Shown: positions 9,862 through 61,262 of the stretch, piece after piece
Layout: each line of letters begins with the position of its first letter
How positions within the stretch are numbered: position 1 is the first letter of the stretch
Sequence record: ON529858.1
Length of the DNA: 64,000 nucleotides
Direction: 5' to 3' (one strand)
Made by a program: the position numbers and the translations under genes
Notes under the pieces: model-generated
What the model was told of the DNA's origin: nothing
The model's database searches: none
What the model saw: the letters and a program-made list of their open reading frames with translations, nothing else

Positions 9862-9887
9862 TGACGTTGAACGTCGTCGATCTTGAC
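9862..9887 (+). promoter_or_regulatory. Phage operator/promoter motif copy
   Basis: TGACG-TTGAA-CGTCG-TCGATC-TTGAC upstream of the DUF2460 gene. Confidence 0.7.
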
Positions 9888-9935
9888 GTTAACCACGATC
9901 TCTGTCATCCAAGGACCTCCCCAGCCGGACCCCTA

Positions 9936-12668
9936 ATGAGCGACTTCCACGAAATCCTGTTCCCGCCGACGATCTCCTATGGGTCGTCGGGCGGACCCCG
10001 GTTCAAGACCACGCTGTTCACCACGGACGCGGGCTATGAGCAGCGCAATATCGACTGGACGGAAGTCAGGCACGAATACGACGTGGCCCACGCCATGCGC
10101 GAGTTCGACGGCACGCTGAACGTCGCCGGCATCCACCAGCTTCACGCCTTCTTCATGGCGCGCGCCGGCCGGTCGCACGGCTTCCGCTTCAAGGACTGGA
10201 ACGACCACCGCGTCGACGACGGGCAGGTTCTGGGCTCCGGCGATGGCGGCACGACCTCCTTCCAGATCATCAAGACCTACTACGAGAAGCAGAACGAAAA
10301 CCAGTGGGAGTCGATCTTCGACCGCCGCATCACGAAGGTCGATTGGGACTCCGTGATCACCGTCCGCCTGGACGATGAGATCATCAATCCGATGTATTGG
10401 ACCCTCGACTACAACACCGGCATCCTGACCTTCCTCACGGCCCCGCCGGTCGGCGCTTCCGTCACCATCGACGGCGTCCTGTTCCACGTCCCGGTCCGTT
10501 TCGACACCGACTATTGCGACGTCACGGTCGAGTTCTGGAACGGCGGCTCCTGGCCGTCGATCCCGCTGATTGAACTGCGCCAGCCCAACGACGCCTACAA
10601 GATCAAGAGCCTGACGCTCAACGACACGATCCATGAGGTCCTGTTCCCCGTCGGTGTCTCCTGGGGCGCCTCGGGCGGACCGAAGTTCAAGACCGCGATC
10701 TATACGATCGACTCGGGCTACGAGGCCAACGTCCGCGACTGGACCCGCACGCGGGCGGAATACGAGTGCTCGCACGAGGTCAAGCACCCCGAGCAGATGA
10801 AGACCCTGACCGAGTTCTTCATGAACCGGCGCGGGATGGCCTACGGCTTCCGCTACAAGGACTGGTCCGACTACCGGCTCAAGCAGGAGAAGATCGAAGG
10901 CAAGGGCAACCACGCCCAGAAGATTTTCCAGATCACGAAGACCTACCGCAGCCACCGCGAAGGCGCGGAGCCGACGACCTACGTCCGCCGCATCACGAAG
11001 CTGGCCTGGAACACCATCGCCGGCGTCACCGTCGGCGGCGTCGTCGCCCGCCAGTCCAATGAAGGCGATTGGGGCGACATCACGGACTTCACCAAGCCCT
11101 GGTATCACGTCGACGTCGACAAGGGGAAGATCGAGTTCTACGAGGCCCCGGCCGGCCGCCGCTACGAAGGCGTGACCGACCGCACGCCGCTGACGCTGAT
11201 CACCACCGGCGGACTGTTCACGAACTCGGTTGCGACCAACATTGGCGGCCGGTATGTCTACGCCGATCCCGACGCCGGCTACATCTACATGCTGGGCGGC
11301 GGCGGCGGGCAGAACGGCATTCGGCGCGTCCGGATGTCTGACGGCGTCGAGGACTTCCAGGTGCGGTCCGAGACGATCGGCTTCCCCCTGACCAACGTCT
11401 CCTATGACGACCGCAAGATCAGTTCGTTCGTGGCGGCCGGCAACGGCTTCATCTACGTCATGGTCGGCGGCTTCAACACCCAGGTCCTCTATAAGATCGA
11501 CCTGAGCGACTTCAGCATCGCCGCGTCGCGCGGGACGGCCGCCGGCGGCCTCCCGTCCGGATCGCAGACTTCCGCCGCCCTCGCACCCGGCGCCGTCTCC
11601 AAGGACGGCACGCGGGTCATCCACCTGGGACAACTCGGCGGCGAAGACGCCGTCAACGTCTTCACCACCGAAGACCTGACCCCGGTGCGGACCTGCGACG
11701 TGGGCGGCTTCATCCCGATCGCGAACAACCCCCTGCGCGCCGCCTGCCCGCTCTACGAGGTCAACTTCGGCATCCTCCTGTCCTGGGACGTCAACTCCGA
11801 CAAGGGCGCCCTGGTCGAGCTGTGGGACGACGCCGGGCACAAGCTGCTTCAGTTCGAAGGCGTGGGCGACTGGATCGCTCGCGACGACGGGGCCACGCCC
11901 ACCGACGCCGGCGTCCTGGTCGGCTGGCACGACGCCGACGGCGTCTACATCTCCAAGTATTCCGAGGCCGAGCAGAAGGAAGTCTGGCGCGCCACTGTGC
12001 CCGTCCAGGGCGCGGTGTCCCCGCAGTCGCGCGTCGCCGGGCACATGGCCTATGCGGCGGATGACGTGATCATCCACATCGACACCACCACCGGCGAGGT
12101 GATCACCCGCGCCAGCGAGGTCGACAACTTCTCGTCGGCGCAGTTCTACGACCGCATCACCGACCGCATCTACGGCGTGCCCCAGATCAACGAGGTCGAC
12201 GGCTATCTGGACACCAGCGTCGAGGGGCTTCAGGTCCTGGATGCGGCTGAAATCGTCATCGGCACGGCCGAGTTCCACGTTCCGGTCCGCTTCGACAGCG
12301 ACCAACTGGACGTGACCCAGGACCACTTCAACGTCTCGTCGTGGCCGTCCATCAGCCTCGTCGAAATCCGCGATTGGGTCGAACTCGGGATCAGCGAGCC
12401 GCCGGCGCCGCGCGGCGTCAAGAGCCCCCACACCATCACGCCGGGCAAGCGCTGGCAGACCGTGCTCGCGAGCGGCGGCGTCGGCGCAGTCGCCTATTAT
12501 CCGACGGCCTACGCGGCGTGCCGCCGCCAGTGGGAAGAGTTCGCCAACACCGAGCGCACCGAGTTCATCGGCGCCACCGTGCTCGATAGCGGCAACGCCG
12601 TGTGCATGTGGTCCTACATCCCGGCCGATCCGCTGCCGGCCATCGTTTCTCTAGTTGACGACGTCTGA
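9936..12668 (+). CDS. DUF2460-family tail-tip protein, two DUF2460 units, the second split by a beta-propeller-like insert
   Basis: FHEILFPPTISYGSSGGPRFKT and IHEVLFPVGVSWGASGGPKFKT; two VPVRFD motifs; ATG at 9936 downstream of the promoter motif. Confidence 0.85.
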   Translation: MSDFHEILFPPTISYGSSGGPRFKTTLFTTDAGYEQRNIDWTEVRHEYDVAHAMREFDGTLNVAGIHQLHAFFMARAGRSHGFRFKDWNDHRVDDGQVLGSGDGGTTSFQIIKTYYEKQNENQWESIFDRRITKVDWDSVITVRLDDEIINPMYWTLDYNTGILTFLTAPPVGASVTIDGVLFHVPVRFDTDYCDVTVEFWNGGSWPSIPLIELRQPNDAYKIKSLTLNDTIHEVLFPVGVSWGASGGPKFKTAIYTIDSGYEANVRDWTRTRAEYECSHEVKHPEQMKTLTEFFMNRRGMAYGFRYKDWSDYRLKQEKIEGKGNHAQKIFQITKTYRSHREGAEPTTYVRRITKLAWNTIAGVTVGGVVARQSNEGDWGDITDFTKPWYHVDVDKGKIEFYEAPAGRRYEGVTDRTPLTLITTGGLFTNSVATNIGGRYVYADPDAGYIYMLGGGGGQNGIRRVRMSDGVEDFQVRSETIGFPLTNVSYDDRKISSFVAAGNGFIYVMVGGFNTQVLYKIDLSDFSIAASRGTAAGGLPSGSQTSAALAPGAVSKDGTRVIHLGQLGGEDAVNVFTTEDLTPVRTCDVGGFIPIANNPLRAACPLYEVNFGILLSWDVNSDKGALVELWDDAGHKLLQFEGVGDWIARDDGATPTDAGVLVGWHDADGVYISKYSEAEQKEVWRATVPVQGAVSPQSRVAGHMAYAADDVIIHIDTTTGEVITRASEVDNFSSAQFYDRITDRIYGVPQINEVDGYLDTSVEGLQVLDAAEIVIGTAEFHVPVRFDSDQLDVTQDHFNVSSWPSISLVEIRDWVELGISEPPAPRGVKSPHTITPGKRWQTVLASGGVGAVAYYPTAYAACRRQWEEFANTERTEFIGATVLDSGNAVCMWSYIPADPLPAIVSLVDDV

Positions 12669-14293: not shown

Positions 14294-14706
14294 CCCGAGA
14301 CGAGATCGTAAACGAAGCCCGGTCCTACCTCGGCAAGCCGTGGCGCCATCGCGGCCGGCTGCGGTCCGGGCTGGATTGCGCGGGGCTGCTGGTGCTCGTG
14401 TCCAACACGGTCGGCCACGAGGTCGAAGACGTCGAGGCCTATTCGCGCCTGCCCGACAAGGAGCGTTTCGTCGATCACCTGAAGGCGCAGTTCCAGCCGG
14501 CCTCGCTGCCGCTGAAGCCGGGCATGATCGTGGTCCTGCGCGACGGCATCCTGCCCTGCCACACGGGCATCCTGGGGTGGAAGCACGACCGCCTCACCCT
14601 CATCCACGCTTCGGCGACTAAGCGCATGGTCGTGGAGGAAGTCTGGGAACAGTTCTGGACCTCCAAGTTCCGTTGCGCGCTCGATTTTCCTGGTGTTGAA
14701 GACTAA
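14290..14706 (+). CDS. NlpC/P60-family tail peptidase
   Basis: IVNEARSYLGKPWRHRGR...GLDCAGL with downstream His residues; ATGA overlap with the upstream gene. Confidence 0.85.
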   Translation: MTRDEIVNEARSYLGKPWRHRGRLRSGLDCAGLLVLVSNTVGHEVEDVEAYSRLPDKERFVDHLKAQFQPASLPLKPGMIVVLRDGILPCHTGILGWKHDRLTLIHASATKRMVVEEVWEQFWTSKFRCALDFPGVED

Positions 14707-17700
14707 TGGCTGATCCTTTTTCCTTCGCAATCGCGACCGTCGCCCAGATCGGGATCGGCTACCTCTTCCCGTCTGAAGGCCCTCGCCTGAAGGACCTGAA
14801 GGTGTCGGCGTCGACCTATGGCGCCGCGATCCCCGAGGTCTTCGGGACCTGCCGCGTGGGCGCGAACATGATCTGGTCCGCGCCGATCGAAGAGCGCAAG
14901 CGCAAGCGGTCCGGCAAGGGCGGCGGCGCCTACAACGAATACACCTACTACTGCTCCTTCGCCATGGCGCTCTGCAAGGGTCCCGTCTCGATGGTCCGTC
15001 GCCTGTGGGCGGACGGCAAGCTGATCTATGACGCGACCGGCGCGTCGGAGGGCTTGCAGTCGGGCAAGATTCGCCTGCGTATCTACAACGGCACCGAAGA
15101 CCAGATGCCCGACGCGCTGATCGAGCGCCTGAGCGCCGGCGGCAAGCAGAACCAACTCATCCCGGCCCCGCCCGGCGACCAGATCACCCTCTACAAGAAC
15201 GGCAACTACGGCTCCAAGGCGCTGACCTACAGCACGTCGATCGCCGACATGAACAAGACCGGCCAGGGCCTGAACGACGGCGCCTCGTCGATCAAGACGG
15301 TCGGCCCGTGGGAGGTGTTCGAACACGCGGACTTCAAGGGCGCGTCGACGGTCATCAACGGCGACGTGCCGGACCTGGGCGCGATCGGCTTCAACGACAA
15401 GATTTCCTCCTTCCGTCCGGCCAACGACTACGCCGCCAGCGGCAACGTCCCCGCCTATCGCGACCTCTGCTATGTCGTGTTCGAGGACATGCCGCTGGCG
15501 GACTTCGGCGGCCGTCTACCGCAGATCGCCGCAGAGGTCTTCGCTGACGCCACCGGCGGCGGCACGCAAGGCGTTCCCACGACGATCGAAGTGGCCTCCA
15601 AGGACGAAGCGCACCCGCTCGACGGTTATCAGTCGGACTTCCTGGCTGACAACGACCGGGGCTACATCTACGTCCGCTCCACGAGCCCGGACGGCCTGCG
15701 CCGCATTCGAATGTCGGACGGCACCGAGGACCGGCAGGTGCTGGCCTCGCAGATGGGCTTCAGCCTGGACCCGACCAACGTCTACGACAGGGCGACGGTG
15801 GGTCCGCTCCTGTGCGTCACGCAGGACGGCTCCATCCTGGCCTTCAAGGGCGGCTCGAACAACTACAACGCCGTCGTCAAGATCGACCCGATCTCGCTCC
15901 AGGTCGTCGGTCAATACTCCCGCAACCACCCCTTCAGCGGCGGTCCTGCGCTGAACGGCCGCTACAGCGCCGCGTCCGGACCCTACGTCGCCTTCTACGG
16001 ACGGGTCGGCTACGGCCCTGGTCAGGTCCACATCCTGGATGAGAACCTGGGCCTTCAAGGTCCGCCCTTCACGGCGGACCTCGGCTCGCCCGCCGGCATC
16101 GTGGGTCGCAACGACGGCACGCCCGTCTTCTACGCCTTCGACAACGCCGAAGCCACCTCGACCACGGGCGCGACCGGCCTGCGGATCGTGAGGCTGGACC
16201 CGACCAAGAGCGAGTTGAGCGAACTCGTCTCCTTCACGCCCGATGACTTCGGCATCCCCACCCCGACGATGATGTGCCAGAGCGCGCACTACGATCCGTC
16301 GGATGGCGGTGTGCTGCTGCACCTGCGGGCAGGCTCCGGCTTTGGCGCGTCGTATCTGGCGAAGTTCTCCTTCGACACGATGAGCCTGACCTGGACCGGG
16401 GCTTACCCGGTCTCGCTCAACACCCGCTTCGTCTCGCCGCGCATTCTCAGTGGTGAGTTCGCCTGGGTCAACGACGACACCCTCTACGCCATCTCGACGA
16501 TCTCGGGCGCCTTCATCGACCGCGACGCCGACCTCTATGTCGACCCCGAGGACGACGCGAACGACCCGGCCTTCGACGACGGCGCGGCGGGCGTGCCGAT
16601 CGACGGCATCAATGGCGTCGCCGTCTCCTACGAGTCCTACGACAGCCTGCGCAACTCCGTGATCTGCTTTGGATCGGGAACGCCGGCGATCATCCGCACA
16701 GGCGCCGCCGCTACGCCGGGCACGACGCTCGGCTGGGTGGTCGAACAGATGCTGCGCAAGGGCGGCCTGACGAACAAGAACTTCGACCTCACCGCCCTCT
16801 ACACGATCCCGATCCGGGGTTACGGCTGGGCGTCAGGCACCGACATCAAGTCGATCCTGGACGAACTGTCTCGGGTCTTCCTGTTCGACCTGTTCGAGTC
16901 GAACGGCAAGCTGAAGGCCCGACTGCGCGGCGACGAGACGGTCACCGTCTTCTCGCAGGACATCACCGAGATCAGCCAGGACCTGCTTGGGTCGACCAGC
17001 GCGGAGACGATGGACTTCTGGAAGGAGACCCGCATGTCGGAGCAGGACCTGCCCGAGCGCGTGTCGATGACCTACATGAACGTCGACGACGACTTCGAAG
17101 TGTCGACGGCTCAGTCCCAGCGCATCTCCGAGCCCATCCCGACGATGTTCTCGCGACAGCAGGTCTCGATGCAGATCAACCTCGTGCTCACGCCCACCGA
17201 GGCGAAGAACATGGTCAATCGGATGCTCTACTCGCAGTGGAGCGAACGGACCAAGCACGAGACCCGTCTGCCCTGGGCCTATCTGAACCTGGACCCGGCT
17301 GATCTGATCAAGGTCAAGCTGAACGACGGCCGGGCCTATGTCGAGCGTATCCACCAAACGGAGTTCGGCGCCAACTTCTCGATCGAGGCCGAGACCTATG
17401 GACAGGACTCGGGCTCCTACGAGAGCGAGGCTGTCGGCGAAGGCGGTGGCTCCGGCCGGGTCGACGTCATCTACCTGACCAAGCCCGCCCAGGCCTTCGT
17501 CCTCAACACGCCTCTGCTGCGCGACCAGGACGACTCGGGCGGCGGCTTCTCGCGCTACTACACCGCCGTCGGCACGGCCGCGCCGGGCGTCTTCCAGGGC
17601 GCCGGCGTGTTCCGCTCGATCACCGGGCAGGACTACGACGAACTCTACGCCGAGACCACCGAAGTCGAATGGGGCGTTCTGGCCGGTGCGCTGCCGCCGG

Positions 17701-18482
17701 CGCCGCATGGGGCCTTCGCGCTCGATTGGGAGTCGACGGTCAAGCTGTTCCCTGGTTCCGGGGGCTTCGAACTGGAGTCCATCACCGACGACGAACTCTG
17801 GGCCGGCGGCAACCTCTGCGTCATCGGCGACGAGGTCATCCAGTTCCGCGACGCTCAGCAGGAGGAAGACGGCTCCTGGACCCTGCGCACCCTGGCGCGC
17901 GCCCGGCGTGGGACGGAATACGCTCACGACAAGCACAAGAACGGCGAGCGCTTCATCTTCCTGTCCTCGGAGACTGTCGAGAGCCAGGGCGATCTCGTCG
18001 ACTCGCGTGGTCAGGATCGCTACTTCAAGGCGGTCGGCACGGGCCGGACGGTCAGCGACGCCCAGGCGCTCAAGATCAACTACGAGCCCCGCGACCTGAT
18101 GCCCTACGCCATCACGGACCTGCGCCGCACGATCGACACGGTCACGCCGGCGATCACCTTCACCTGGGCGCGCCGCACGCGCCTGGGCGGGAACCTGCTC
18201 GACGAGACGGGCGACGTGCCGCTCAACGAAGCGTTCGAGCGCTACGAGGTCTACGTCCTCAACGAGCCCTTCAGCGGCGACGCCTCTCGCGGCCGAGCCC
18301 CCGACAGCTACAAGCGGATGACCGTCGTCGAGGGTCCGACCTGGACCTACAGCGCAGCAGATATGACGACGGACAACGTCGCCATTCTTGACACTCTGCA
18401 CGTTGTGGTCTATCAAATCAGTGCAGCCGTCGGGCGTGGATTCCCGACCGCACGCACGATCGAGCCCTGGCGCGAGTGGTGA
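14706..18482 (+). CDS. Central tail / host-specificity protein (GTA-type) with beta-gamma-crystallin and propeller-like inserts
   Basis: STYGAAIPEVFGTCRVGANMIW, VPAYRDLCYVVFEDMPLADFGGRLPQI, LARARRGTE motifs. Confidence 0.85.
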   Translation: MADPFSFAIATVAQIGIGYLFPSEGPRLKDLKVSASTYGAAIPEVFGTCRVGANMIWSAPIEERKRKRSGKGGGAYNEYTYYCSFAMALCKGPVSMVRRLWADGKLIYDATGASEGLQSGKIRLRIYNGTEDQMPDALIERLSAGGKQNQLIPAPPGDQITLYKNGNYGSKALTYSTSIADMNKTGQGLNDGASSIKTVGPWEVFEHADFKGASTVINGDVPDLGAIGFNDKISSFRPANDYAASGNVPAYRDLCYVVFEDMPLADFGGRLPQIAAEVFADATGGGTQGVPTTIEVASKDEAHPLDGYQSDFLADNDRGYIYVRSTSPDGLRRIRMSDGTEDRQVLASQMGFSLDPTNVYDRATVGPLLCVTQDGSILAFKGGSNNYNAVVKIDPISLQVVGQYSRNHPFSGGPALNGRYSAASGPYVAFYGRVGYGPGQVHILDENLGLQGPPFTADLGSPAGIVGRNDGTPVFYAFDNAEATSTTGATGLRIVRLDPTKSELSELVSFTPDDFGIPTPTMMCQSAHYDPSDGGVLLHLRAGSGFGASYLAKFSFDTMSLTWTGAYPVSLNTRFVSPRILSGEFAWVNDDTLYAISTISGAFIDRDADLYVDPEDDANDPAFDDGAAGVPIDGINGVAVSYESYDSLRNSVICFGSGTPAIIRTGAAATPGTTLGWVVEQMLRKGGLTNKNFDLTALYTIPIRGYGWASGTDIKSILDELSRVFLFDLFESNGKLKARLRGDETVTVFSQDITEISQDLLGSTSAETMDFWKETRMSEQDLPERVSMTYMNVDDDFEVSTAQSQRISEPIPTMFSRQQVSMQINLVLTPTEAKNMVNRMLYSQWSERTKHETRLPWAYLNLDPADLIKVKLNDGRAYVERIHQTEFGANFSIEAETYGQDSGSYESEAVGEGGGSGRVDVIYLTKPAQAFVLNTPLLRDQDDSGGGFSRYYTAVGTAAPGVFQGAGVFRSITGQDYDELYAETTEVEWGVLAGALPPAPHGAFALDWESTVKLFPGSGGFELESITDDELWAGGNLCVIGDEVIQFRDAQQEEDGSWTLRTLARARRGTEYAHDKHKNGERFIFLSSETVESQGDLVDSRGQDRYFKAVGTGRTVSDAQALKINYEPRDLMPYAITDLRRTIDTVTPAITFTWARRTRLGGNLLDETGDVPLNEAFERYEVYVLNEPFSGDASRGRAPDSYKRMTVVEGPTWTYSAADMTTDNVAILDTLHVVVYQISAAVGRGFPTARTIEPWREW

Positions 18483-18561: not shown

Positions 18562-20844
18562 ATGGCCGATACCCCCATCCTCAAGCTGCCGCAAGTCGCT
18601 CCTGGTCAGAACCAGAAGGAGTTGACGATCAACACCGCTCTGGCGATCCTGGAAGCGGCGATGAACGACAGCCTTGTCCACACGGGCAAGACGGCGAACT
18701 TCACGTTGAATGAGGATCAGTGGACCCGCTACTTCCTGCACCGGGTCTCGGGCAACACCACCGCCATCACCATGACCGTCCCGGCGCGGGAGCGCCTGTT
18801 CGTCGTTTCCAACGAAGGCACGGCGGCTCTGACGATCACGCCGGCCGGCGGCAGTGCCGGCAACTCGGCGGAAGTCCCGTTCGGCAAGATCGTCCTGTTG
18901 GTCAACGACGGCGTCAACATCTACGCCATTTCGTCCGGAGTCGGCCGCCTCCAGGACCTGTCCGACGTGGATGGCACGGGCGCCGTGGATGGGATGATCC
19001 TGTCCTATGAGTCGACGGGAGAGAAGTGGGTTCCGGTCACCGTCGCCAACCTCTTCAACCTCGCCTTCACCGGCCTGAGCGACACCCCGAACAACTACAC
19101 TGGTGCGGCCAAGAAGTTCGTGCGCGTCAACGCCGCCGCGAACGCCCTGGAGTTTTTCGTCCCCTCGCTGACCTCCCTGTCCGACGTCAATGAGACCCTG
19201 GCGCCCGATGACGGCGAGGTCCTGACCTTCCTGGACGGGAAGTGGATTTCGGCTCCCGTCGGCGCCGCCACCATCAAGTTCACCGATCTCAATGATGCGC
19301 CCGACAGCTTCACCGGGCAGGGTGGCAAGGCCGTCGTCGTCAAGGAAAGCGAAGACGGAGTCGAGTTCGTCGAGGTCGGCGGCAAGATCACCGTCCAGAA
19401 CGAAGGCACCGAGATCGCCGCAGAGGCTGCGGTCGTCGACTTCGTCGGGACCGGCGTCAACGCGACCTTCGCCGGCGGCAAGGTCACCGTCACCGTCAAT
19501 CCGACAGCGCTGACCGCCGCCCCTGATGTGCCCGACGCCCTCACCGGGCAGGCGGGCAAGGCCCTCATCGTCAAGGATACTGAGGACGGGTTCGAGTTCG
19601 GCGACACCGCCGGCACCTTCCTGGCGCTGACCGACACCCCCGCCGCCTATACGGGTCAAGCCGGCAAGGCCGCCGTGGTCAACGACGCCGAAACCGGCCT
19701 GGAGTTCGGCGACATCGCCGGCGTCATCGCGGTTCAGGAAGAAGACGCCCTGGTCCAGGCCGCCGTCACCACCCTCAACTTCGAAGGCGACGGCGTCTCC
19801 GTGTCCGATGACGGCGCCGGCAAGGTGACCATCACGGTCGGCCCCGGCGGCGCCGGCGTCGGCCCCTTCGGCGAGCACGCCTACTGGCGCGTCTTCTGCA
19901 CCTCCAGCCACGGCAACAACTGGTTCTCGACGAAGGAACTGGACTTCTATTCCGAACCCGGCGGCGCGGTCCTCAACACGGGAGGCACCCCGGTCGAAGG
20001 CGGGCACTACAGCGCTCAGGTCGCCGCCAATGCGTTCGACAACGACACGGCGACCGAATGGACCGCCCCGACCAACGGGACGAACACGGGAACGGCATGG
20101 ATCGGCTATCACTTCGCCGCCCCCGTCTCCGTCGTCGAGGTCAAGCTGCAAGCCTCCAACTCGCCGACGACTGAGTCCTTCAAGACGGGCTCGGTGCAGT
20201 ATTCCGACAACGGCGTCGACTGGACCGAGGCCTGGGATGTCGCGGATCAACCGAACTGGACGACCAATGAAATCCGGACGTTCAACTACCTGAGCGCGCC
20301 GACCGGCTTCGTCTCCCTGGGCGACACGCCGACCTCCTACCTCGGCCAAGCCGACAAGAAGGTTCGCGTCAAGACCGCTGAGTCCGGCCTGGAGTTCGTC
20401 GCCGACACCTTCCTGTCGCAGATCGACACGCCTTCGACCTACTCGGGCCAGGGCGGCAAGACCGTGCGCGTAAACAGCGCGGCGAGCGGCCTGGAGTTCG
20501 TTCTGGACACCCAGGCGGCAAACGTCGTTTCGTCCAAGACGGCGGCCTACACGCCGGTGCTGGCCGACGCCCAAGAGCGGACCGGGGTGATCCCGGTCAA
20601 CGTCGCCTCCACGGTCGATGTGACGATCCCGACCAACACGGCGGTCCCCTATCCGGTCGGCACTCAGATTTCGATCCTGCAAATCGGCGCCGCCAAGGTC
20701 GGCATCGTCGGCGCCGCCGGCGTCACGGTCAACAAGCCCGCCGCCTTCAACGCCAAGACCCGTGAACAGAACTCCCTCGTGATGGCGCTGAAGATCGCGA
20801 CCGACACCTGGGTTCTGCTGGGCGATATGGAAGTCGCACCCTAA
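18562..20844 (+). CDS. Tail fibre protein (DUF2793-like N-terminus, ~30-aa fibre repeats, discoidin/F5-8-like domain)
   Basis: MADTPILKLPQVAPGQNQKELTINTALAILE; six L.DTP..Y.GQ.GK.V.V...E.GLEF repeats; AANAFDNDTATEW...WIGYHFAAPVSVVEVKL. Confidence 0.8.
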   Translation: MADTPILKLPQVAPGQNQKELTINTALAILEAAMNDSLVHTGKTANFTLNEDQWTRYFLHRVSGNTTAITMTVPARERLFVVSNEGTAALTITPAGGSAGNSAEVPFGKIVLLVNDGVNIYAISSGVGRLQDLSDVDGTGAVDGMILSYESTGEKWVPVTVANLFNLAFTGLSDTPNNYTGAAKKFVRVNAAANALEFFVPSLTSLSDVNETLAPDDGEVLTFLDGKWISAPVGAATIKFTDLNDAPDSFTGQGGKAVVVKESEDGVEFVEVGGKITVQNEGTEIAAEAAVVDFVGTGVNATFAGGKVTVTVNPTALTAAPDVPDALTGQAGKALIVKDTEDGFEFGDTAGTFLALTDTPAAYTGQAGKAAVVNDAETGLEFGDIAGVIAVQEEDALVQAAVTTLNFEGDGVSVSDDGAGKVTITVGPGGAGVGPFGEHAYWRVFCTSSHGNNWFSTKELDFYSEPGGAVLNTGGTPVEGGHYSAQVAANAFDNDTATEWTAPTNGTNTGTAWIGYHFAAPVSVVEVKLQASNSPTTESFKTGSVQYSDNGVDWTEAWDVADQPNWTTNEIRTFNYLSAPTGFVSLGDTPTSYLGQADKKVRVKTAESGLEFVADTFLSQIDTPSTYSGQGGKTVRVNSAASGLEFVLDTQAANVVSSKTAAYTPVLADAQERTGVIPVNVASTVDVTIPTNTAVPYPVGTQISILQIGAAKVGIVGAAGVTVNKPAAFNAKTREQNSLVMALKIATDTWVLLGDMEVAP

Positions 20845-23486: not shown

Positions 23487-23501
23487 GTCGTGAATCTTGA
23501 C
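23486..23501 (+). promoter_or_regulatory. Phage promoter motif copy upstream of the lysis cassette
   Basis: GGTCG-TGAATC-TTGAC. Confidence 0.7.
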
Positions 23502-23556
23502 GTTAACCCCGATTCGTGCCATGGTTCCGGGCTTTTCGAAAAGAGTCAATCCCCTC

Positions 23557-25447: not shown

Positions 25448-25451
25448 GCCC

Positions 25452-25643: not shown

Positions 25644-25674
25644 CCTTTCCCACCTGCTTTTCCCTGAGCGCGCT

Positions 25675-25926: not shown

Positions 25927-25930
25927 TCAG

Positions 25931-25956: not shown

Positions 25957-25984
25957 AGCGAGCCCTTTTTAGTGTAGGCCTCAT

Positions 25985-47174: not shown

Positions 47175-47206
47175 GGTTAACGTCTGTCTCACACTCGGAG
47201 AAGGAC

Positions 47207-47222
47207 GTCAAGATTCACGACG
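47207..47222 (-). promoter_or_regulatory. Phage promoter motif copy
   Basis: Minus strand CGTCG-TGAATC-TTGAC. Confidence 0.72.
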
Positions 47223-47243
47223 TTCGAGGTCAAGAATCCTGCA

Positions 47244-49025: not shown

Positions 49026-49054
49026 GGTTTAGCGACGTCATTCGTCGCGGTCAA
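49026..49054 (-). promoter_or_regulatory. sigma70 promoter of the large RNA with the operator palindrome in its spacer
   Basis: TTGACC-N17-TAAACC; CGACG-N5-CGTCG at 49033-49047. Confidence 0.7.
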
Positions 49055-49093: not shown

Positions 49094-49122
49094 CTTTTCT
49101 TGCTGCCTGGGTGTCAGGATTC

Positions 49123-49151
49123 TTGACACAGGGTGTCAACGAGCATATAGG
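49123..49151 (+). promoter_or_regulatory. sigma70 promoter of the tmRNA-tRNA operon
   Basis: TTGACA-N17-TATAGG. Confidence 0.8.
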
Positions 49152-50436: not shown

Positions 50437-50835
50437 CTAAAGTCGACCCGAGTTGTATTCGGCCCAGCGATCCGACCAGTATTCCTCGTAGTCCTCGGCG
50501 CAGTCCGTGCAGAGCCAGACCTTGTTCGGGTCGGGCTCGCCGCTCTTGGGGTCCCAGACGTAGCAGGTCATCGACCCAGGCTGATGCACGCCGTAGAAGG
50601 AGCCGCAGTTCTCGCAGCCGCCGAGCGCGGCGCCCTGCTCGGCGAAGTGACCGTTGATGGCCCAGCGCAGGCGGTTGAAGTTACCCCAGATCAGGTGCTT
50701 GAAGGCGTTCCGCAGGAACCACGTCCTGGTGCCGTATCGCACGGTCCAGCGCATCGGCTCCCAGGTGAAGACCTTGACCTTCTCGATCGTGACCGGGCCG
50801 ATCACGACCTTCTCAGGTGTCCATGATAGCGTCAA
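50437..50835 (-). CDS. Hypothetical Cys-rich (possible Zn-binding) protein; start uncertain
   Basis: CENC...C...CTDC pattern; Trp-rich. Confidence 0.55.
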   Translation of the reverse strand: MTLSWTPEKVVIGPVTIEKVKVFTWEPMRWTVRYGTRTWFLRNAFKHLIWGNFNRLRWAINGHFAEQGAALGGCENCGSFYGVHQPGSMTCYVWDPKSGEPDPNKVWLCTDCAEDYEEYWSDRWAEYNSGRL

Positions 50836-52711
50836 TGTTGTCCGCCTTTTCTTTCGAGGCTTGAGCGATCCGGGCGTCGAGCGACCCGTCCGCCATGAGG
50901 AAGAAGACCATGATCTTGAAGGCCGTCTGGCCGATTCTGCACGCCCGGTCCTCACATTGTTCCATGAGGGTCGGAGTCCAGTCTGCTTCCAGGAAGCACA
51001 CGTCAGACGCGCGTGTCAGCGTAAATCCAACCCCGGCGGCTTGCAGGTTGCCGATGAAGACGCGGCAGGATTCGTCCTCCTGGAAGCGGTCGACCTCGGG
51101 CTGACGCTTCTTCAAGGGCGTGCCACCGTAGACCACCGCCGGATTGTATTCGGCCAGGGCCTCCTTGACGGCGAGCACGACGTCGGAGTGGTAGGCGAAG
51201 ATCAGCAGCTTTTCGCCGCCCTCCAGGAAGTTCTTCAGCCAGGGGATGGCGGCCGACAGCTTGGCGAGGCCCAGGTCGCGGCGGACCTGGGCGATCTCTT
51301 CGAACATGACCTGGACCATGGGCTCGGACAGGCCGAGCACGGCGGCGGCGTAGGGCAGGTTGATGGCGCGGCTATTCGGCCGATCGGGGTCCCCGTCTTG
51401 ACCGACGGCGCGGTCGAAGCCCATCTTGAAGGCGTTGTCCATCGCCGACAGTCCCATGCGGATGTCGCGCTCTTCGGGCGTCTCATCCGCCGGCGCCAGG
51501 ACCGTCGACTCATAGAGCCGCATGGCCTGGGCGATCTCATCCTCGCGGGCGACGAGTTCCCTGATCTCGGGGCTGTCCAGGAGCACGACCTGACGGAACT
51601 TGTCGGGCAGTTCGGGCAGCACCTCCTTCTTCTGGCGCCGCACCATGAACATCTCGCGCAGCCGGGCGCCCAACTCTTCACGGTTCGACGACCCGGTGAA
51701 GTCGTAGGAGCCGCGCGGGCCGCGCATGGGGTCGAACCAGCCGTTGCAGTAGCGGTAGCCGAACTCCAGATAGTCGGAGCCCAGGCCGTCGGGATCGAAG
51801 GCCTTGACCATCGGCCACAGTTCGATCGGCCGGTTCATCATCGGGGTCCCCGACAGGAACAGCCGGCGCTTGGCGTCGATGGCGTTGAACCACTTCACAC
51901 CCTTCTTCTTGCGGGCCTTGCGTCGCGCGCCGGCGTCGCACTGAGCATCGCCCAGGACGAACAGGGTCCGGCCGCTGTCGGGCGTCTTCAGGACGTGGCA
52001 TTCGTCGCAGATCAGAATATCCCAGACGCGGTCCGCGATCGGGGTGCTGAAGCGCTCCAGGATGTCGTAGTTGATGATCACGACTTCGGTGTCAGGCCAC
52101 CACGTCTTATGCACCTCGGTCCGGAACTTGGGCTTGCCCTTGTTCTTGCCGGACTTGATCAGGCCGTCGGGAATCTTCTCGCGGTGCTGGGTCTCGGCGA
52201 TGCCGACCGACAGGCCCTTGGCGTCCCACTTCTCCCACTCGCGCTTCCAGTTGACCTTCAGCGAGGCCGGCACGACGACCAGGATTTGGCGGGCGCGGCG
52301 CAGGGCGTTCGCCACGCCGATCGCCTGGATTGTCTTACCCAACCCTGGCGGGTCTCCGAAGAGGGTGTCCTTGCGTCCAGGTTGTGTCGCGTAGTCGATC
52401 CCCGCCTTCTGGAACGGCTTGTAGTCGATCCCCATGTCGAGCAGCGCCTGGGGGATCGGCGGGTTGTAGGTGGTCGAGGCCTTGTAGGAGAGGTCGCGGC
52501 TGATCTCGGCGTTGCGCAGCCGATCCTCGATCTGCTGGATCGCGCGCTCGCTCCAGGTCGCGCCCTTGACGGCCTGCGCATCCTTCTGGCGCTGGGTGAT
52601 CCAGGCCTTGCGCCGGCTGCTGTAGGTGAAGCCGGCGCCCTTGAAGAGGTCGCGGTCCTCCCACGCACCGATGCCGTAGAAGAAGCCGTCGCTATAGTCG
52701 ATATGCGCCAA
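50813..52711 (-). CDS. SNF2/HARP-like SF2 helicase
   Basis: GDPPGLGKTIQ, DECH, SGTP, AAGVGFTLT, QCEDRACRIGQ. Confidence 0.92.
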   Translation of the reverse strand: MAHIDYSDGFFYGIGAWEDRDLFKGAGFTYSSRRKAWITQRQKDAQAVKGATWSERAIQQIEDRLRNAEISRDLSYKASTTYNPPIPQALLDMGIDYKPFQKAGIDYATQPGRKDTLFGDPPGLGKTIQAIGVANALRRARQILVVVPASLKVNWKREWEKWDAKGLSVGIAETQHREKIPDGLIKSGKNKGKPKFRTEVHKTWWPDTEVVIINYDILERFSTPIADRVWDILICDECHVLKTPDSGRTLFVLGDAQCDAGARRKARKKKGVKWFNAIDAKRRLFLSGTPMMNRPIELWPMVKAFDPDGLGSDYLEFGYRYCNGWFDPMRGPRGSYDFTGSSNREELGARLREMFMVRRQKKEVLPELPDKFRQVVLLDSPEIRELVAREDEIAQAMRLYESTVLAPADETPEERDIRMGLSAMDNAFKMGFDRAVGQDGDPDRPNSRAINLPYAAAVLGLSEPMVQVMFEEIAQVRRDLGLAKLSAAIPWLKNFLEGGEKLLIFAYHSDVVLAVKEALAEYNPAVVYGGTPLKKRQPEVDRFQEDESCRVFIGNLQAAGVGFTLTRASDVCFLEADWTPTLMEQCEDRACRIGQTAFKIMVFFLMADGSLDARIAQASKEKADNIDAIMDT

Positions 52712-52769
52712 GCGCTCAGTCCAGACGGCCGTTAACCATCCGGACTATGTCGCCTATCGCGACGTCTCT

Positions 52770-52785
52770 GTCAAGATTCGCGACG
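52770..52785 (-). promoter_or_regulatory. Phage promoter motif copy upstream of the helicase
   Basis: Minus strand CGTCG-CGAATC-TTGAC. Confidence 0.7.
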
Positions 52786-52992
52786 TTCCAGGATCACGCC
52801 GCCGGGCACGAACCGGATGCCCTCATGCGTCAGCGCCACCAGGATCGACGCCATCACGGCGCGGATCGGCTCACGGGCGCCGCGTTCGAAGTCGGCCAGG
52901 GTCGACAGACCGACGTTGGCGGCCTGCGCGAGGTCCGCCTGGGTCCAGTCCAGCAGCGCGCGCGCCGCCTTGATCTGGAGGCGGCCCGTCAC
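52771..52992 (-). CDS. Small XRE-family HTH protein
   Basis: QIKAARALLDWTQADLAQAANVGLSTLADFERG; GTGA overlap with the thioredoxin stop. Confidence 0.82.
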   Translation of the reverse strand: MTGRLQIKAARALLDWTQADLAQAANVGLSTLADFERGAREPIRAVMASILVALTHEGIRFVPGGVILERRES

Positions 52993-56570: not shown

Positions 56571-58685
56571 CTATTTGAACTTCATGGTGATGGGGACCAT
56601 CTTGGCGACAGTCATGAGGCATTCGACGGAGGCGATCAGGGCGTCCGTGTTGTCGATGTATTCGAGCCCGTTGATGAACCGGGTCAAGGGGTGCTGGTAG
56701 GCGTTCTTGATGGTGTCGTGGGCCTTGTCCCAGGCCTTGAAACGCTCGGTCTTCGGCGGCAGCTTGACGTAGTGCTCGTTGAGCGGCGTGTCGAGCAGGT
56801 CCATGACCTTCTTCTCGGGTTCCGAGAAGGTGCTGAAGCCCCCGGCGTGCATCGGGCGCAGCGCCTTCGCCATGGCGCCGACGGGCGACTTGGTCCTCTC
56901 CAGCTTGTCGTAGAGTTCGGGCGCCTTGGCTTGCAGCTTGGCGGTCATCGGCCCCAGCCCGCTCGACGTCGCCATGTTGCCCTTGAAGTGCTGGAGATCG
57001 GCCCAGGTCAGGCCCATCTCCCGCGCATGGGCGTCGATCGCCTCGCGCAGGTGCAGCACGCCGGCCTGGGTCACGATCGGCACGGCCGTGGGCGACGACA
57101 GGTAGAGCCGGGTGATGCCGAACCGCTTGGCGAAGGCGAAGACGTCGGACGGCCGCTTGCGGTAGTGATCGCTCTCGATCCAGGCGGCGTCGGCGAGATC
57201 GCCCGAGACCTGGGTCACCGGCGACTGGTCACCGGCCTTCAGGGCGAGCCCCAGGCCCCGGATCGGCGGCAGGCTGTCCTCGGAGAGCACCGGCTGGAGG
57301 CGCTTGGGCGCCGCGTCGCGCAGGTCGTCATAGCTGATCTTGACCCGCTTCACGTCGGTGAAGACGGCGCTCCAGACATCGTCGGAGAAGCCCTCGCCGA
57401 ACATGAAGAAGGCGTTGTTGCGGCCCTTCTTCTCCAGGAAGGCGCGGGTCAGGCGCGAGACGCGGCGCAGTTCGCTCTTGGAGAACTCGTTGAGCGAGAC
57501 CTTGTCGCGCGTGGCGTCCAGCAGGCCCTCGTAGTCCTCGATCCAGTAGACCTCGGTGACCGGCTTCCAGGTCTTGGCGTCGATCGTCGAGGCCTGCTTG
57601 AAGACCCAGCGGCTGCGGCTGGTCTCGAACGCGGCGTGGAACTGCTGCGCGTTGGACTTCAGGCGGATGTGCGTGCTGTTCAGGCCGGTGAAGGGGTGGA
57701 TGACCTCGCCCGTCATCCAGTTCGGCTTGATCTTCTCGTAGGTGGTGAAGAACTCGACCAGGGACTCGATGTCCTTGACCTGATCCCAGACCTGCGTCTT
57801 GACCTCTTCTTTCAAGGCGTTGATGCGGCCGTTCAGGTAGTCGACCACCTGCGGCGTATATTGGATCGACTCTCGCGAACCGATGACAGCGATCTGGCCG
57901 ATCTCAGCTTCGATCAGCCACTTCCGATCTCCGCTGTCGGACGGGACGTTGACCGGGTGCTTGATGGGGTAGATGACCGAACCCTGACGGACGCTCCACT
58001 GCTGCGGCAGCGAACTCTTGGTGTAGGCGGCCCAGCCCTCACCTTCGAACGCGATCTCGCCGCGCGAGTTCGTCAGGGGGATGTTGCTTTCGAACGTGGG
58101 GGTGACGTGCGCCAAAGAGGCGTTGTGGATGGCGGTGGCGAAGGCGGCGAAGTCCTTCTGCTCGACGGCGACCGTGACCCGCACGCCGCGCGGTTCGTCG
58201 TTGGGCTCCGTCCCCATCAGGACGACACGGGGCCGGCCCGAGGCCGTGATGCCGCAGCCATAGTGCCGCACGGTCTCGCCGTCATAGCAGGAGAGGGAGA
58301 ACTGATCGGAGTAGGCCAGCGGGGTCGCCTTGCCGAGCCCGAAGGCGCCGGTCAGGTCGTTGGTCTCATCCTTGTCGCTCTCGAACAAGGTGCGATAGAG
58401 CGTCATCACCTTGTGGTGATCCATGCCCGTGCCGTAGTCACGGACGAAGAACTCCGGCCTGATCTCGGTCGGCGCGTGAACAAAGAAGGGCTGGGTGTTG
58501 CCGGCGACGATGTGGCTGTCGGAGGCGTTCGACGAGATTTCGCGCACCGGCGCGCCGACCTTGTCGGAATACATGCCGTCGATCAGCATCCGGAACGCCT
58601 TGCCGGATGGATTGATGATGAAGTCCGCCTCTTCCAGAGCGTCGCCGATGGTCTCAAAGTGGATTTTCTCGGGGGCGAGTTTCAT
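56571..58685 (-). CDS. rIIA: rIIA-like protein with N-terminal GHKL ATPase
   Basis: YSDKVGAPVREISSNASDSH, VRDYGTG, TGAFGLG, GVRVTV. Confidence 0.88.
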   Translation of the reverse strand: MKLAPEKIHFETIGDALEEADFIINPSGKAFRMLIDGMYSDKVGAPVREISSNASDSHIVAGNTQPFFVHAPTEIRPEFFVRDYGTGMDHHKVMTLYRTLFESDKDETNDLTGAFGLGKATPLAYSDQFSLSCYDGETVRHYGCGITASGRPRVVLMGTEPNDEPRGVRVTVAVEQKDFAAFATAIHNASLAHVTPTFESNIPLTNSRGEIAFEGEGWAAYTKSSLPQQWSVRQGSVIYPIKHPVNVPSDSGDRKWLIEAEIGQIAVIGSRESIQYTPQVVDYLNGRINALKEEVKTQVWDQVKDIESLVEFFTTYEKIKPNWMTGEVIHPFTGLNSTHIRLKSNAQQFHAAFETSRSRWVFKQASTIDAKTWKPVTEVYWIEDYEGLLDATRDKVSLNEFSKSELRRVSRLTRAFLEKKGRNNAFFMFGEGFSDDVWSAVFTDVKRVKISYDDLRDAAPKRLQPVLSEDSLPPIRGLGLALKAGDQSPVTQVSGDLADAAWIESDHYRKRPSDVFAFAKRFGITRLYLSSPTAVPIVTQAGVLHLREAIDAHAREMGLTWADLQHFKGNMATSSGLGPMTAKLQAKAPELYDKLERTKSPVGAMAKALRPMHAGGFSTFSEPEKKVMDLLDTPLNEHYVKLPPKTERFKAWDKAHDTIKNAYQHPLTRFINGLEYIDNTDALIASVECLMTVAKMVPITMKFK

Positions 58686-58772
58686 CGGGGCTCCATCGTT
58701 TCGAACGTCGTTGGAAACAGCATCTAGCCGTCCTGACACCCGCCGTCAACACACAACGTCCAGTATCCACAA

Positions 58773-58788
58773 CGTCGTGAATCTTGAC
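58773..58788 (+). promoter_or_regulatory. Phage promoter motif copy at the strand switch
   Basis: CGTCG-TGAATC-TTGAC, immediately preceded by GTATCCACA (DnaA box with 1 mismatch). Confidence 0.72.
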
Positions 58789-58818
58789 GTTCAGGGCTGT
58801 TCATGCCATGTGTCGAGG

Positions 58819-59061
58819 ATGCGCAACGTCACCGAGGACTGTCCCCCGCCGAAGTTTGGCAAGGCCGATCTTTCGATGATGCCTGAGCGCGGCGTCGAGG
58901 GCTGCATCTGCCGCGAGCCCGGCGCCGACAAGCGGCGCGATTTCATCCTCCTGGCCGACCGGCGGGGGGAGATTGTTTGGTATGCGAGGAATACATGCCT
59001 GATCCACGGCCTAACGGCGACCGACCTGCCGGACAACAGCGGGGAGCCCTCCACGACCTGA
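58819..59061 (+). CDS. Hypothetical protein
   Basis: 80-aa ORF directly after the promoter. Confidence 0.5.
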   Translation: MRNVTEDCPPPKFGKADLSMMPERGVEGCICREPGADKRRDFILLADRRGEIVWYARNTCLIHGLTATDLPDNSGEPSTT

Positions 59062-59795: not shown

Positions 59796-59863
59796 ACGCT
59801 AAGTGTTGACAAGCATCCTATCGTGACATAATCAGGCTCCGACGACATCGAAAGGAGCCCGAT

Positions 59864-60514
59864 ATGCCGACCAACAGCAAGGCCGTGAAGGGGAAGCGCA
59901 CGCTTCTGATCACCAAGGCCAAGACCGTGAGCGCCGAGGACTTCGAAATGGTCCTGGCCGCCGCCAAGCGTGGTCCGCACGGGCTGCGCGACGAGGTCAT
60001 GCTGCTGCTCAGCTTCTATGCTGGGCTGCGTCCCCAGGAGATCGCCGGTCTGAAATGGAAGCGCAACGTCCTCGACGCGCGCGGCCGTCTGACCGATCAC
60101 GTTTTCGTGGACCGTGGCATCGCCAAGCGCACCGTCGAGCGGACGATCGAGATGCACCCGCGTCTGAAGGATGCCCTGTCGCGCCTGCGTGCTCAGCGTC
60201 CCAAGGACAAGTTCATCGTCTACCCGCTGGCCGCCCGCCGCGCCGACATCCCCGGCGTCGACCCCGAACAGGTCGCGCCGAACACGCTGGTGCAATACTT
60301 CGGGCGGCTGTATGATCTGCACGGTCTGGACGGCTGCACCAGCTACTCCGGCCGGCGATCGTTCATCACGCACCTGAGCCGGACCTGCAACCTCGCCGGC
60401 GCCTCGATCTATGACGTGGCGCGGGTGGCTGGTCACAAGTCGATCCAGACCACGCAAGGGTATCTGGAAGAGCAGCCTGACAAGGCCGCCCTGGTTGGGA
60501 TGATGTTCGCATGA
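59864..60514 (+). CDS. Tyrosine recombinase, catalytic domain only
   Basis: GLRPQEI, TSYSGRRSF, AGHKSIQTTQGY; own TTGACA promoter at 59806. Confidence 0.88.
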   Translation: MPTNSKAVKGKRTLLITKAKTVSAEDFEMVLAAAKRGPHGLRDEVMLLLSFYAGLRPQEIAGLKWKRNVLDARGRLTDHVFVDRGIAKRTVERTIEMHPRLKDALSRLRAQRPKDKFIVYPLAARRADIPGVDPEQVAPNTLVQYFGRLYDLHGLDGCTSYSGRRSFITHLSRTCNLAGASIYDVARVAGHKSIQTTQGYLEEQPDKAALVGMMFA

Positions 60515-60937: not shown

Positions 60938-61225
60938 ATGACGAATCAAGCCAAGACCACCGACGATCGCGGCACGCTGATTGTTGACCAGACCCGCGAC
61001 GGTCACCGCCTGCAAGTCTTCCAGACCCAGAACGACCAAGACGCCAGCATCACCGCCTGCGTCGGCTACTTCGACGGCCAGCGCTCGGTCACGGGCACGC
61101 GCCCCGACATCGTCGCGAACGCCCTGGTCAAGAAGCACCTGACGGCCATCCCGCCCAAGGATCGCGGCGTGGTGATCGACTTCGCCACCGCTCGTGCCCT
61201 GCGCAAGGGCGGCTATATGAACTAG
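60938..61225 (+). CDS. Hypothetical protein
   Basis: 95 aa, RBS AAGGAG. Confidence 0.65.
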   Translation: MTNQAKTTDDRGTLIVDQTRDGHRLQVFQTQNDQDASITACVGYFDGQRSVTGTRPDIVANALVKKHLTAIPPKDRGVVIDFATARALRKGGYMN

Positions 61226-61236
61226 GGGAGAATCGG

Positions 61237-61262
61237 CGACGTCCTACGTCGCCGATCTTGAC
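61237..61262 (+). promoter_or_regulatory. Phage operator/promoter motif copy upstream of the primase
   Basis: CGACG-TCCTA-CGTCG-CCGATC-TTGACA-N17-GATTGT. Confidence 0.75.

Follow-up and report, generated by a model that had tools for sequence, protein, structure and literature searches.

The last 64 kb of the genome record of Brevundimonas phage vB_BgoS-Bajun (ON529858.1, 207 kb; positions 143262-207261, in the following called the window and numbered from its first base) carry ten copies of an 11-bp element placed directly against a TTGAC -35 sequence. Judged by their sequences, these sites are sigma-70/sigma-73-type promoters of a phage-specific family, termed class M in this report, which heads replication, tail, lysis and packaging operons. 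On balance, we interpret them as phage-specific promoters equipped with an upstream operator for a dimeric regulator that is probably encoded by the phage itself, the CI/LexA-fold protein encoded at 26403-27149 being the best candidate. Bajun, a giant siphovirus, is one of the phiCbK-like phages (Dolichocephalovirinae), and phiCbK is the classic Caulobacter phage, the transcription program of which has never been mapped at promoter level. No published account of the motif string or of phiCbK promoters was found in the searchable literature. The control of class M promoters is apparently undescribed, while the kind of control, an operator beside the -35 sequence, is conventional and familiar in phages.

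A promoter family at operon starts

The window was compared with the rest of the Bajun genome, the complete phiCbK genome, 40-kb stretches of the phages CcrColossus, Gurke and Kabachok, and a 31-kb stretch of Lacusarx. In a test with 20 kb of the window (25000-45000), about 40% of the sequence could be aligned to phiCbK DNA, with an identity of about 77%. A first-pass annotation of the window had listed nine copies of a motif consisting of CGTCG, six bases and TTGAC, and all nine were found where they had been placed. The pattern CGTCG-N6-TTGAC occurs 14 times in the window and 0.40 ± 0.60 times in shuffled sequences. Four of the 14 matches (3252, 17313, 31915, and 62891) are intragenic, have no ATC and look like chance matches. 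A longer form, A-CGTCG-YSR-ATC-TTGAC, is common to ten window sites, namely the nine known ones and one that had been missed (18376-18392), which is accompanied by a perfect palindrome at 18367-18381. The earlier statement that every copy contains CGTCG holds with one exception, as the site at 23485-23501 reads GGTCG-TGAATC-TTGAC. When a weight matrix trained on 14 Bajun sites, all of them outside the window, was run on the window, the ten sites scored 22-32 bits, and simulated sequences gave about one match of at least 12 bits. Seven of the ten sites lie wholly within annotated intergenic DNA, which makes up 8.2% of the window; an eighth (61246) overlaps the annotation solely at a spurious-looking antisense open reading frame (ORF) discussed below, and the remaining two are located in the final 100 nt of an upstream co-directional gene. 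All ten face the next gene.

The full class M set comprises 23 Bajun and 17 phiCbK sites, in which TTGAC is invariant by construction. Aligned on TTGAC, the Bajun sites share G-14 (19 of 23) and A-11 (20 of 23), and the phiCbK sites share G-14 and A-11 (13 of 17 each) as well as T-7 (10 of 17). T-12 is not conserved. The -10 region is thus a Caulobacter sigma-73 box (GCtANAWC) following a 17-bp spacer, albeit a weak one, because the usual T-12 is missing. The base after TTGAC is A or G, and the distance from TTGAC to the start codon is 35-94 nt after correction of two gene starts, a range compatible with a sigma-70/sigma-73 promoter. Upstream of the -35, the 11-bp element occupies -47 to -36 and reads A-CGTCG-YGA-ATC in Bajun, its invariant part being the arm proximal to the promoter together with ATC (GTCG-YGA-ATC). 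In total, the conserved stretch of class M sites measures 17-27 bp, and the flanks are unrelated.

Conservation and lineage variation in phiCbK-like phages

Class M is not confined to the window. Nearly all of the 23 Bajun sites are found between 78 kb and the end of the record, where the terminase, head, tRNA, tail, lysis, and replication regions are encoded, so that of the window-wide regulon proposed earlier the notion of one promoter family at operon starts stands, whereas its scope is genome-wide and even subfamily-wide. A positional counterpart exists in phiCbK for nine of the ten window sites, with the element a-TGTCGTGAATC-TTGAC at orthologous places. In phiCbK, class M sites precede the genes for the portal gp042, gp067, gp070, gp079, gp084, gp087, the tail tube gp092, gp096, gp100, the endolysin gp104, the ribonucleotide reductase (RNR) gp112, gp121, gp127, the helicase gp131, gp139, gp146, and gp312, and CGTGAATCTTGA is the top repeated 12-mer of this genome, simple GC repeats aside. 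The corresponding element is GCCAGGAATC in CcrColossus (written out, tGCCAGGAATC-TTGAC), TGCCGGGAATG-TTGAC in Kabachok, and TGTTGTAATTC-TTGAC in Gurke. In an alignment of the RNR promoter from five lineages, TTGAC and the TA of the -10 are invariant and the 11-mer upstream is lineage-specific.

In the IMG/VR database, the exact 15-mer is present in multiple copies solely in phiCbK-like genomes (e.g., CcrBL10, Rogue, and Karma). A scan of the same database with a 14-base pattern yielded mostly single chance matches, and a search for related loci with the tail-tube protein as query gave no match. No class M-like element was seen in the 31-kb Lacusarx stretch, which contains head and tail genes. 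Based on the genomes compared, the family appears to extend over the whole phiCbK-like subfamily (Dolichocephalovirinae).

A host regulon was considered as well and rejected. A scan of bacterial genomes, one per species, for the 17-mer AYGTCGTGAATCTTGAC gave 99 scattered matches, which is near a rough chance expectation, and none of the 80 matches listed out of these 99 is from a named Caulobacter or Brevundimonas. Contigs of one unrelated metagenome-assembled genome of the Opitutaceae (Verrucomicrobia) contain the same 17-mer at least six times, in each case inside a longer repeat, GGGGTCATGTCGTGAATCTTGACA, beside an IS200/Y1 transposase gene; being part of this longer repeat, these copies were not accepted as family members and probably represent an unrelated dispersed repeat. 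They do illustrate that the string can arise elsewhere, as would be expected if the element were a dispersed repeat or a chance pattern without any transcriptional role. We nevertheless give this explanation a negligible probability, since conservation in the phages covers 17-27 bp only, the orientation always matches the downstream gene, the sites recur at orthologous positions in diverged phages, and a -10 signal lies at the right distance.

The lineage variation bears on a further alternative, namely that the 11-mer extends the core promoter (UP-like or as an extended -35) and is read directly by the C-terminal domain of the host RNA polymerase alpha subunit or by sigma region 4, giving strong, factor-independent promoters. 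It would account for the element adjoining the -35 without any variation in spacing and for GAATC-TTGAC being the part most conserved across lineages; moreover, expression of phiCbK replication genes with such promoters has begun by 15 min (PMC10688885). UP elements, however, are A/T-rich and located at -40 to -60, whereas the class M element is GC-rich (ACGTCGYG) except for its AAT. Its upstream half differs between phiCbK (TGTCGTG) and Colossus (GCCAGG), although both phages have the same host. In addition, the element also occurs inverted, within promoter spacers, and as a dyad of fixed spacing, and bacterial genomes contain the 17-mer about as often as expected by chance, none of the matches listed being from a Caulobacter or Brevundimonas isolate. 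We therefore hold a core-promoter extension to be rather unlikely, and a reading of the element by the host polymerase alone seems unlikely from these sequence comparisons. As a separate observation, gp133 of CcrColossus (26049-26903 of the compared stretch, minus strand) is annotated as an "RNA polymerase alpha subunit C-terminal domain protein" and is encoded beside the endolysin gene, which could bear on the use of upstream elements in the Colossus lineage.

Dyad symmetry and placement within promoter spacers

The exact palindrome CGACG-N5-CGTCG occurs five times in the window, with 1.09 ± 1.07 expected; allowing one mismatch, the excess is weak (28 versus 17.4). Across class M, the symmetry is tied to one geometry. 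At 12 of the 23 Bajun sites, at least five of the six bases from -57 to -52 can pair with those from -46 to -41; this holds for a spacer of 5 only, at which the mean complementarity is 3.7 of 6 as compared to 0.8-2.4 at twelve other spacings. In phiCbK, three of 17 sites reach at least five of six. The first-pass annotation had described the palindrome as fixed relative to TTGAC, which is right as far as its spacing in Bajun is concerned, whereas only about half of the Bajun sites, and few of those in phiCbK, possess the distal arm. Presence of a good distal arm showed no link to presence of GANTC (7/6 versus 6/5, tallied over the Bajun sites). Both arms extend to the full 10 bp, GATTCACGAC-N7-GTCGTGAATC, in the promoter of the phiCbK portal gene and, just beyond the left end of the window, in that of the Bajun tail-tube gene. 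In the core, CGAC-N7-GTCG, the arm centers are 11 bp apart, and the dyad is centered at about -49. A spacing of 11 bp between arm centers is the usual geometry of Cro/CI-type dimers, as in the 434 and lambda operators.

Besides its place upstream of -35, the element is found inside promoter spacers. The promoter of a GOLLD-like RNA (49026-49054, minus strand) consists of TTGACC (49054-49049), a 17-bp spacer and TAAACC (49031-49026), and, as had been noted before, a palindrome (49033-49047) fills this spacer. The phiCbK GOLLD promoter likewise has CGACG-N5-TGTCG inside the spacer of TTGAC-N17-CTAGAA. The RNA itself (48223-48641, minus strand), which is the large RNA of the first-pass annotation, lies between tRNA-Cys and a permuted transfer-messenger RNA (tmRNA) and matches the GOLLD model over its full length with 104 bits (E = 6e-28). 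The Rfam gathering score of 150 is thus missed in Bajun but exceeded in phiCbK, where the corresponding RNA (102288-102774, minus strand), which contains an annotated tRNA-Gly, reaches 165 bits. GOLLD RNA is unannotated in both records. The promoter of the C5-cytosine methylase gene (43486-43514, minus strand; TTGACA at 43514-43509, a 17-bp spacer, TAACCA at 43491-43486) has an inverted GTCGTGAATC in its spacer (43498-43507 on the plus strand), which agrees with the half-site reported there before, and the same layout exists at phiCbK 98011. In these spacers, too, the arm variant tracks the lineage, with CGTCG in Bajun and TGTCG in phiCbK. A third arrangement, TTGAC-N4-GTCGTGAATC, is located downstream of thyX (33634-33662, minus strand; 10-mer at 33653-33644) and is repeated at phiCbK 87913 (minus strand); whether it is a promoter is uncertain, as its -10 is poor.

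The position of the element inside the spacers of the GOLLD and C5-methylase promoters corresponds to a repressing geometry, which would fit one factor acting as both activator and repressor. Such a factor had been suggested before; the suggestion is plausible and its one-factor reading reasonable, because both spacer arrangements are conserved in phiCbK, and it is from the position of the sites that we infer the action of the factor. The lambdoid PRM/OR2 systems (lambda CI, 434, P22 c2) offer a close parallel: a dimeric Cro/CI-type helix-turn-helix (HTH) protein on a 14-17-bp dyad beside the -35 activates through contact with RNA polymerase and acts as a repressor wherever it overlaps the core of a promoter. 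The candidate in Bajun has the same two-domain fold, and the arm spacing fits. In contrast to the lambdoid case, there are about 20 promoters per genome, many sites lack the distal arm, a conserved non-symmetric GAATC separates operator and -35, the phage is not known to be temperate, and binding is predicted from sequence.

Candidate regulators

The gene at 26403-27149 (minus strand) encodes a 248-aa protein with a Cro/CI-type HTH and a LexA/S24-like C-terminal domain, belonging to the family of phiCbK gp109. This family is represented in 38 phage records, all from Caulobacter or Brevundimonas phages, and in no other phage record. A profile of the protein matches 434 Cro and P22 c2, and its structural model (predicted local distance difference test score, pLDDT, 88) matches 186 CI, LexA, and the lambda CI C-terminal domain, while the model of the N-terminal domain alone superimposes on P22 c2 with a template modeling (TM) score of 0.91. 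The Ser of a possible S24 catalytic pair lies outside the conserved columns of the family. Given this fold, the protein is the best candidate reader of the dyad, albeit an unproven one. Its putative recognition helix is LSRPAYNMYE in Bajun, LARTAYIMYE in phiCbK, and LSRSAYCMYE in Colossus and Kabachok; this variation parallels both the motif and the phylogeny and therefore does not constitute independent evidence. phiCbK, one carrier of the protein, has not been reported to be temperate. A hairpin upstream of the CI-like gene (27439-27455) contains a perfect DnaA-box-like TTATCCACA.

Three proteins had been named previously as possible binders of the motif, two of the XRE type (26403 and 52771) and an HTH protein (39911). 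The XRE-type protein at 26403 is the one retained here as the best candidate, and the HTH protein at 39911 is excluded. The latter, a 93-aa sigma-region-4-like protein (39911-40192) with a weak Pfam match, has a homolog in no other phage record, and the element is common to phiCbK whereas the protein is unique to Bajun. A gene annotated as "motA" (Bajun genome 1299-1940) was likewise dismissed as encoding MotA, as the product shows no MotA match and only a weak winged-helix match.

Another set of readers to be weighed is the early XRE factor TgrL (phiCbK gp216 family) or the host proteins RtrA, RtrB, CdxA, and CdxB. TgrL is strongly expressed early and binds many sites together with its host paralogs (PMC10688885), and a homologous XRE gene is present in Bajun (genome 38255-38653). 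The published matrix from chromatin immunoprecipitation sequencing of TgrL (S2 Table), however, has the core C-A-A-C-C and a trailing G and, compared by eye, is unrelated to GTCGTGAATC or CGAC-N7-GTCG; besides, TgrL is mainly a repressor. A reader of the TgrL type was hence rejected, and we rate this whole group of factors as very improbable.

A second promoter class and possible host inputs

A different kind of promoter, termed class E in this report, is of the GTGTTGACA-N17-CTAnA type. In full, it reads ttcttGGCGcgAGA-GTGTTGACA-N17-CTAnA, and a leader with the conserved sequence ACGACAACG-aGGAG comes after it. About 20 copies each exist in Bajun and phiCbK, nearly all in the small-gene early arms (Bajun 1-59 kb, phiCbK 113-196 kb). 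The sole class E promoter of the window is located at 59803-59840 (plus strand), upstream of 59864-60514. Classes M and E partition both genomes. An RNA sequencing (RNA-seq) time course of phiCbK assigned replication genes to the early phase and structural and lysis genes to the middle to late phase (PMC10688885). Since class M is found at both early and middle/late phiCbK genes, the element alone does not set timing.

As five of the nine copies described earlier have a GANTC directly against the -35, a count that we can confirm, a methylation- or GcrA-type input had been inferred. The element would then be an epigenetic switch: CcrM or a phage methylase would methylate its GANTC (-40 to -36), GcrA of the host or the phage would recognize this site, and the promoters would thereby respond to the state of methylation or replication. 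In line with this, GAATC is found at nearly all listed phiCbK class M sites (one has GATTC), and GANTC is depleted 3.6-fold in 32001-64000 (53 versus 192 ± 13 in shuffles), with several of the survivors in promoter elements; moreover, Bajun and phiCbK-type phages encode a GcrA homolog. The GcrA/CcrM promoters of Caulobacter resemble class M in being sigma-73 promoters with a fixed GANTC, but their GcrA sites are found near -20 or between +2 and +30 and read YGAKTCK (PMC4647560), in contrast to TGAATCT or CGAATCT at -40 to -36 in class M. GANTC is also missing at 10 of the 23 Bajun sites (five of ten in the window), and conservation reaches 6-7 bp past it. Furthermore, phage GcrA is distributed differently from the element, with a homolog found in 25 of about 49 subfamily records; CcrColossus, for instance, is reported to lack GcrA (Gill et al., PMC3556154) and yet keeps GGAATC-TTGAC. 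With distribution and site geometry both at odds with it, phage GcrA was rejected as the reader, the input proposed earlier is poorly supported, and an epigenetic switch of this kind appears improbable. A methylation layer in the Caulobacter phages is possible, given that GANTC is depleted in the second half of the window and present at nearly every phiCbK class M site.

A further possible host signal is the CtrA box. Taking a TTAA-N7-TTAA or TTAACCAT box in the promoter as the mark of CtrA, the half-site TTAACC/GGTTAA was found between -35 and +40 at 10 of 23 Bajun and eight of 17 phiCbK class M promoters and at none of 41 class E promoters. The genome rate of this hexamer is 0.013-0.019 per 75 bp, so that its presence in about 45% of class M promoters amounts to a roughly 25- to 35-fold enrichment. 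TTAACC(AT) boxes are located, e.g., at 9888-9896, 23502-23508, 47181-47173 (minus strand), and 52731-52739. This suggests a second input on class M promoters, which would come from the host cell cycle. The CtrA-controlled promoters described for phiCbK-like phages likewise involve a host cell-cycle regulator acting on phage DNA; they concern TTAA-N7-TTAA clusters in the terminal-repeat region, and the passages searched contain no mention of the TTGAC-linked element (Mascolo et al., 2022; PMC9437464).

Proposed mechanism and its weak points

According to the mechanism we favor, a phage-encoded dimer would bind the dyad CGAC-N7-GTCG, with the GTCG of the element as the promoter-proximal arm. The proximal subunit, held in fixed register with RNA polymerase, would help the host holoenzyme to initiate despite the poor -10, at promoters heading DNA-replication, nucleotide-metabolism, tail, lysis, head, and terminase operons. 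Where the element lies between -35 and -10, as at the GOLLD RNA and C5-methylase genes, binding of this protein would silence the promoter. The early small-gene arms would use the separate class E, and CtrA-type boxes would add the host cell-cycle input to class M. A more ambitious version, in which the CI/LexA-fold protein, retained throughout a subfamily of apparently virulent giant phages, is a master switch that turns about 20 replication, virion, and lysis promoters on and the GOLLD and C5-methylase promoters off, with GANTC and CtrA as further layers, strikes us as quite doubtful.

Several observations weigh against an operator read by the CI-like protein. The dyad center at about -49 is not the classic activator position; operators of the lambda PRM type, i.e., class II, are centered at about -42, and here 5 bp (GAATC or equivalent) separate the dyad from TTGAC. 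A symmetric dimer also leaves the strongly conserved GAATC between dyad and -35 unexplained, and the distal arm is nearly absent in phiCbK. As class M heads early replication genes as well as later structural genes, an activator may not be needed. No class M element was seen upstream of the CI-like gene in five phages, and autoregulation of this gene through such an element was consequently rejected. Finally, a gp148-like winged-helix protein and a gp149-like HTH protein, both encoded behind a class E promoter, are equally possible readers; they are represented in 49 and 38 phage records, respectively, all but two of which are named Caulobacter or Brevundimonas phages.

The dedicated-activator classes of other phages (Mu Mor/C, P2 Ogr, phi29 p4, T4 MotA) are comparable insofar as a phage-specific upstream sequence marks a set of operons distinct from those with host-like early promoters. 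Their activator sites are centered at -43.5 (Mor), -55 (Ogr), and about -82 (p4). Unlike Mu and T4 middle promoters, which have no -35, a MotA box centered at -30 replacing it in T4, class M keeps a consensus -35, and the Bajun product annotated as MotA shows no MotA match. Another difference is that class M includes early-expressed replication genes.

The sites amount to a testable promoter map, in which an element of 11-27 bp marks the replication, virion, lysis, and packaging operons across the subfamily. Such a map would allow an operon-by-operon reading of the phiCbK RNA-seq data and could supply defined phage promoters for Caulobacter genetics.

Individual promoters and neighboring genes

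The first four of the window promoters are located on the plus strand. The tail cluster promoter (9861-9912) precedes a gene cluster starting at 9936 and consists of a distal arm TTGACG (four of six), the element ACGTCGTCGATC (9871-9882), which has no GANTC, and TTGAC at 9883-9887; it scores 29.2 and has its phiCbK counterpart at 65669, upstream of gp096. The promoter overlooked before (18366-18417) lies within the 3' end of the tail gene 14706-18482 and is predicted to drive 18562-20844. It combines its perfect CGACG-N5-CGTCG (18367-18381) with TTGAC at 18388-18392, contains no GANTC, scores 22.7 and corresponds to phiCbK 71806, upstream of gp100. The lysis cassette promoter (23475-23526) carries AGGTCGTGAATC, with GGTCG, and TTGAC at 23497-23501 (score 26.4; phiCbK 78366, upstream of the endolysin gp104). 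The gene behind it, annotated as "baseplate central spike complex protein" (23497-24198, plus strand), encodes an endolysin 63% identical to phiCbK gp104, and its start is most likely the Met at 23557 instead of the annotated 23521, since the gp104 alignment begins there and a start at 23521 would fall in the -10 region of the promoter. The one site without a phiCbK counterpart (25930-25981; perfect palindrome at 25931-25945, TTGAC at 25952-25956, score 25.9) points into an unannotated unit of about 0.4 kb (25987-26371) that has no convincing ORF and ends at a strong hairpin terminator (26342-26371) common to the converging CI-like gene. The product of this unit may be a small protein or RNA.

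Four further promoters are on the minus strand. The promoter of the RNR operon (32592-32643; score 31.8) contains a complete six-of-six dyad, ACGACG-N5-CGTCGT, followed by GAATC and TTGAC (32621-32617). The leader of this operon (32528-32590, minus strand) forms a hairpin followed by a T-run, GGCCCTGA-ttat-TCAGGGC-TTTTT, which is kept in Bajun, phiCbK, Colossus, Gurke, and Kabachok and resembles a leader terminator or attenuator; a block upstream of the hairpin, GTCAAGGAATC, is conserved in all five phages as well. At the exonuclease operon (gene 39231-39827), the promoter (39852-39903) has a five-of-six dyad, CCAATC and hence no GANTC, and TTGAC at 39881-39877; it scores 29.1, with a counterpart at phiCbK 94017 (minus strand), upstream of gp121. 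The promoter of a DNA methylase gene (46425-47174) at 47182-47233 has GAATC and TTGAC at 47211-47207 (score 31.8; phiCbK 101269, minus strand, gp127). Owing to a GTTAACCAT box at about +1, its transcript is probably leaderless. The helicase promoter (52745-52796; gene 50813-52711) overlaps the 3' end of a small XRE gene (52771-52992) and has GAATC and TTGAC at 52774-52770, a score of 30.4 and a counterpart at phiCbK 107245 (minus strand), upstream of gp131.

The last two sites are again on the plus strand. The promoter at 58762-58813, which diverges from a rIIA-like gene and is predicted to drive 58819-59061 onward, has GAATC and TTGAC at 58784-58788 (score 31.8; phiCbK 113273, upstream of gp139/140). 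ATCCACA adjoins its element at 58772 (58762-58771). The promoter at 61236-61287 has a six-of-six dyad (61237-61251), TTGAC at 61258-61262, no GANTC, and a score of 27.8, and corresponds to phiCbK 115692, upstream of gp146. Its gene starts near 61325 and continues beyond the end of the window: phiCbK gp146 (1218 aa) can be aligned, in one unbroken plus-strand frame, to a stretch that begins at 61325, passes the record origin and ends at about genome position 900, with 59.6% identity over 1233 aa. The record start thus cuts the gp146 homolog in two, the C-terminal portion being annotated as BAJUN_00010 (Bajun genome 1-903). The annotated minus-strand coding sequence 61244-63634 (BAJUN_03320) is antisense to this homolog and looks like a spurious ORF. 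In addition to the ten sites, the permuted tmRNA is preceded by a degenerate class M variant (49113-49151, plus strand) with GTCAGGATTC at 49113-49122, TTGAC at 49123-49127, and TATAGG at 49146-49151.

Two more annotations in this part of the genome can be refined. The "histidine kinase" gene 56571-58685 (minus strand) occupies the position of the phiCbK rIIA-like gene, and the "hypothetical" 562-aa protein encoded at 44698-46386 (minus strand) belongs to the T5 A1-like/DNA-transfer family (PHROG 1745, E = 3e-185).

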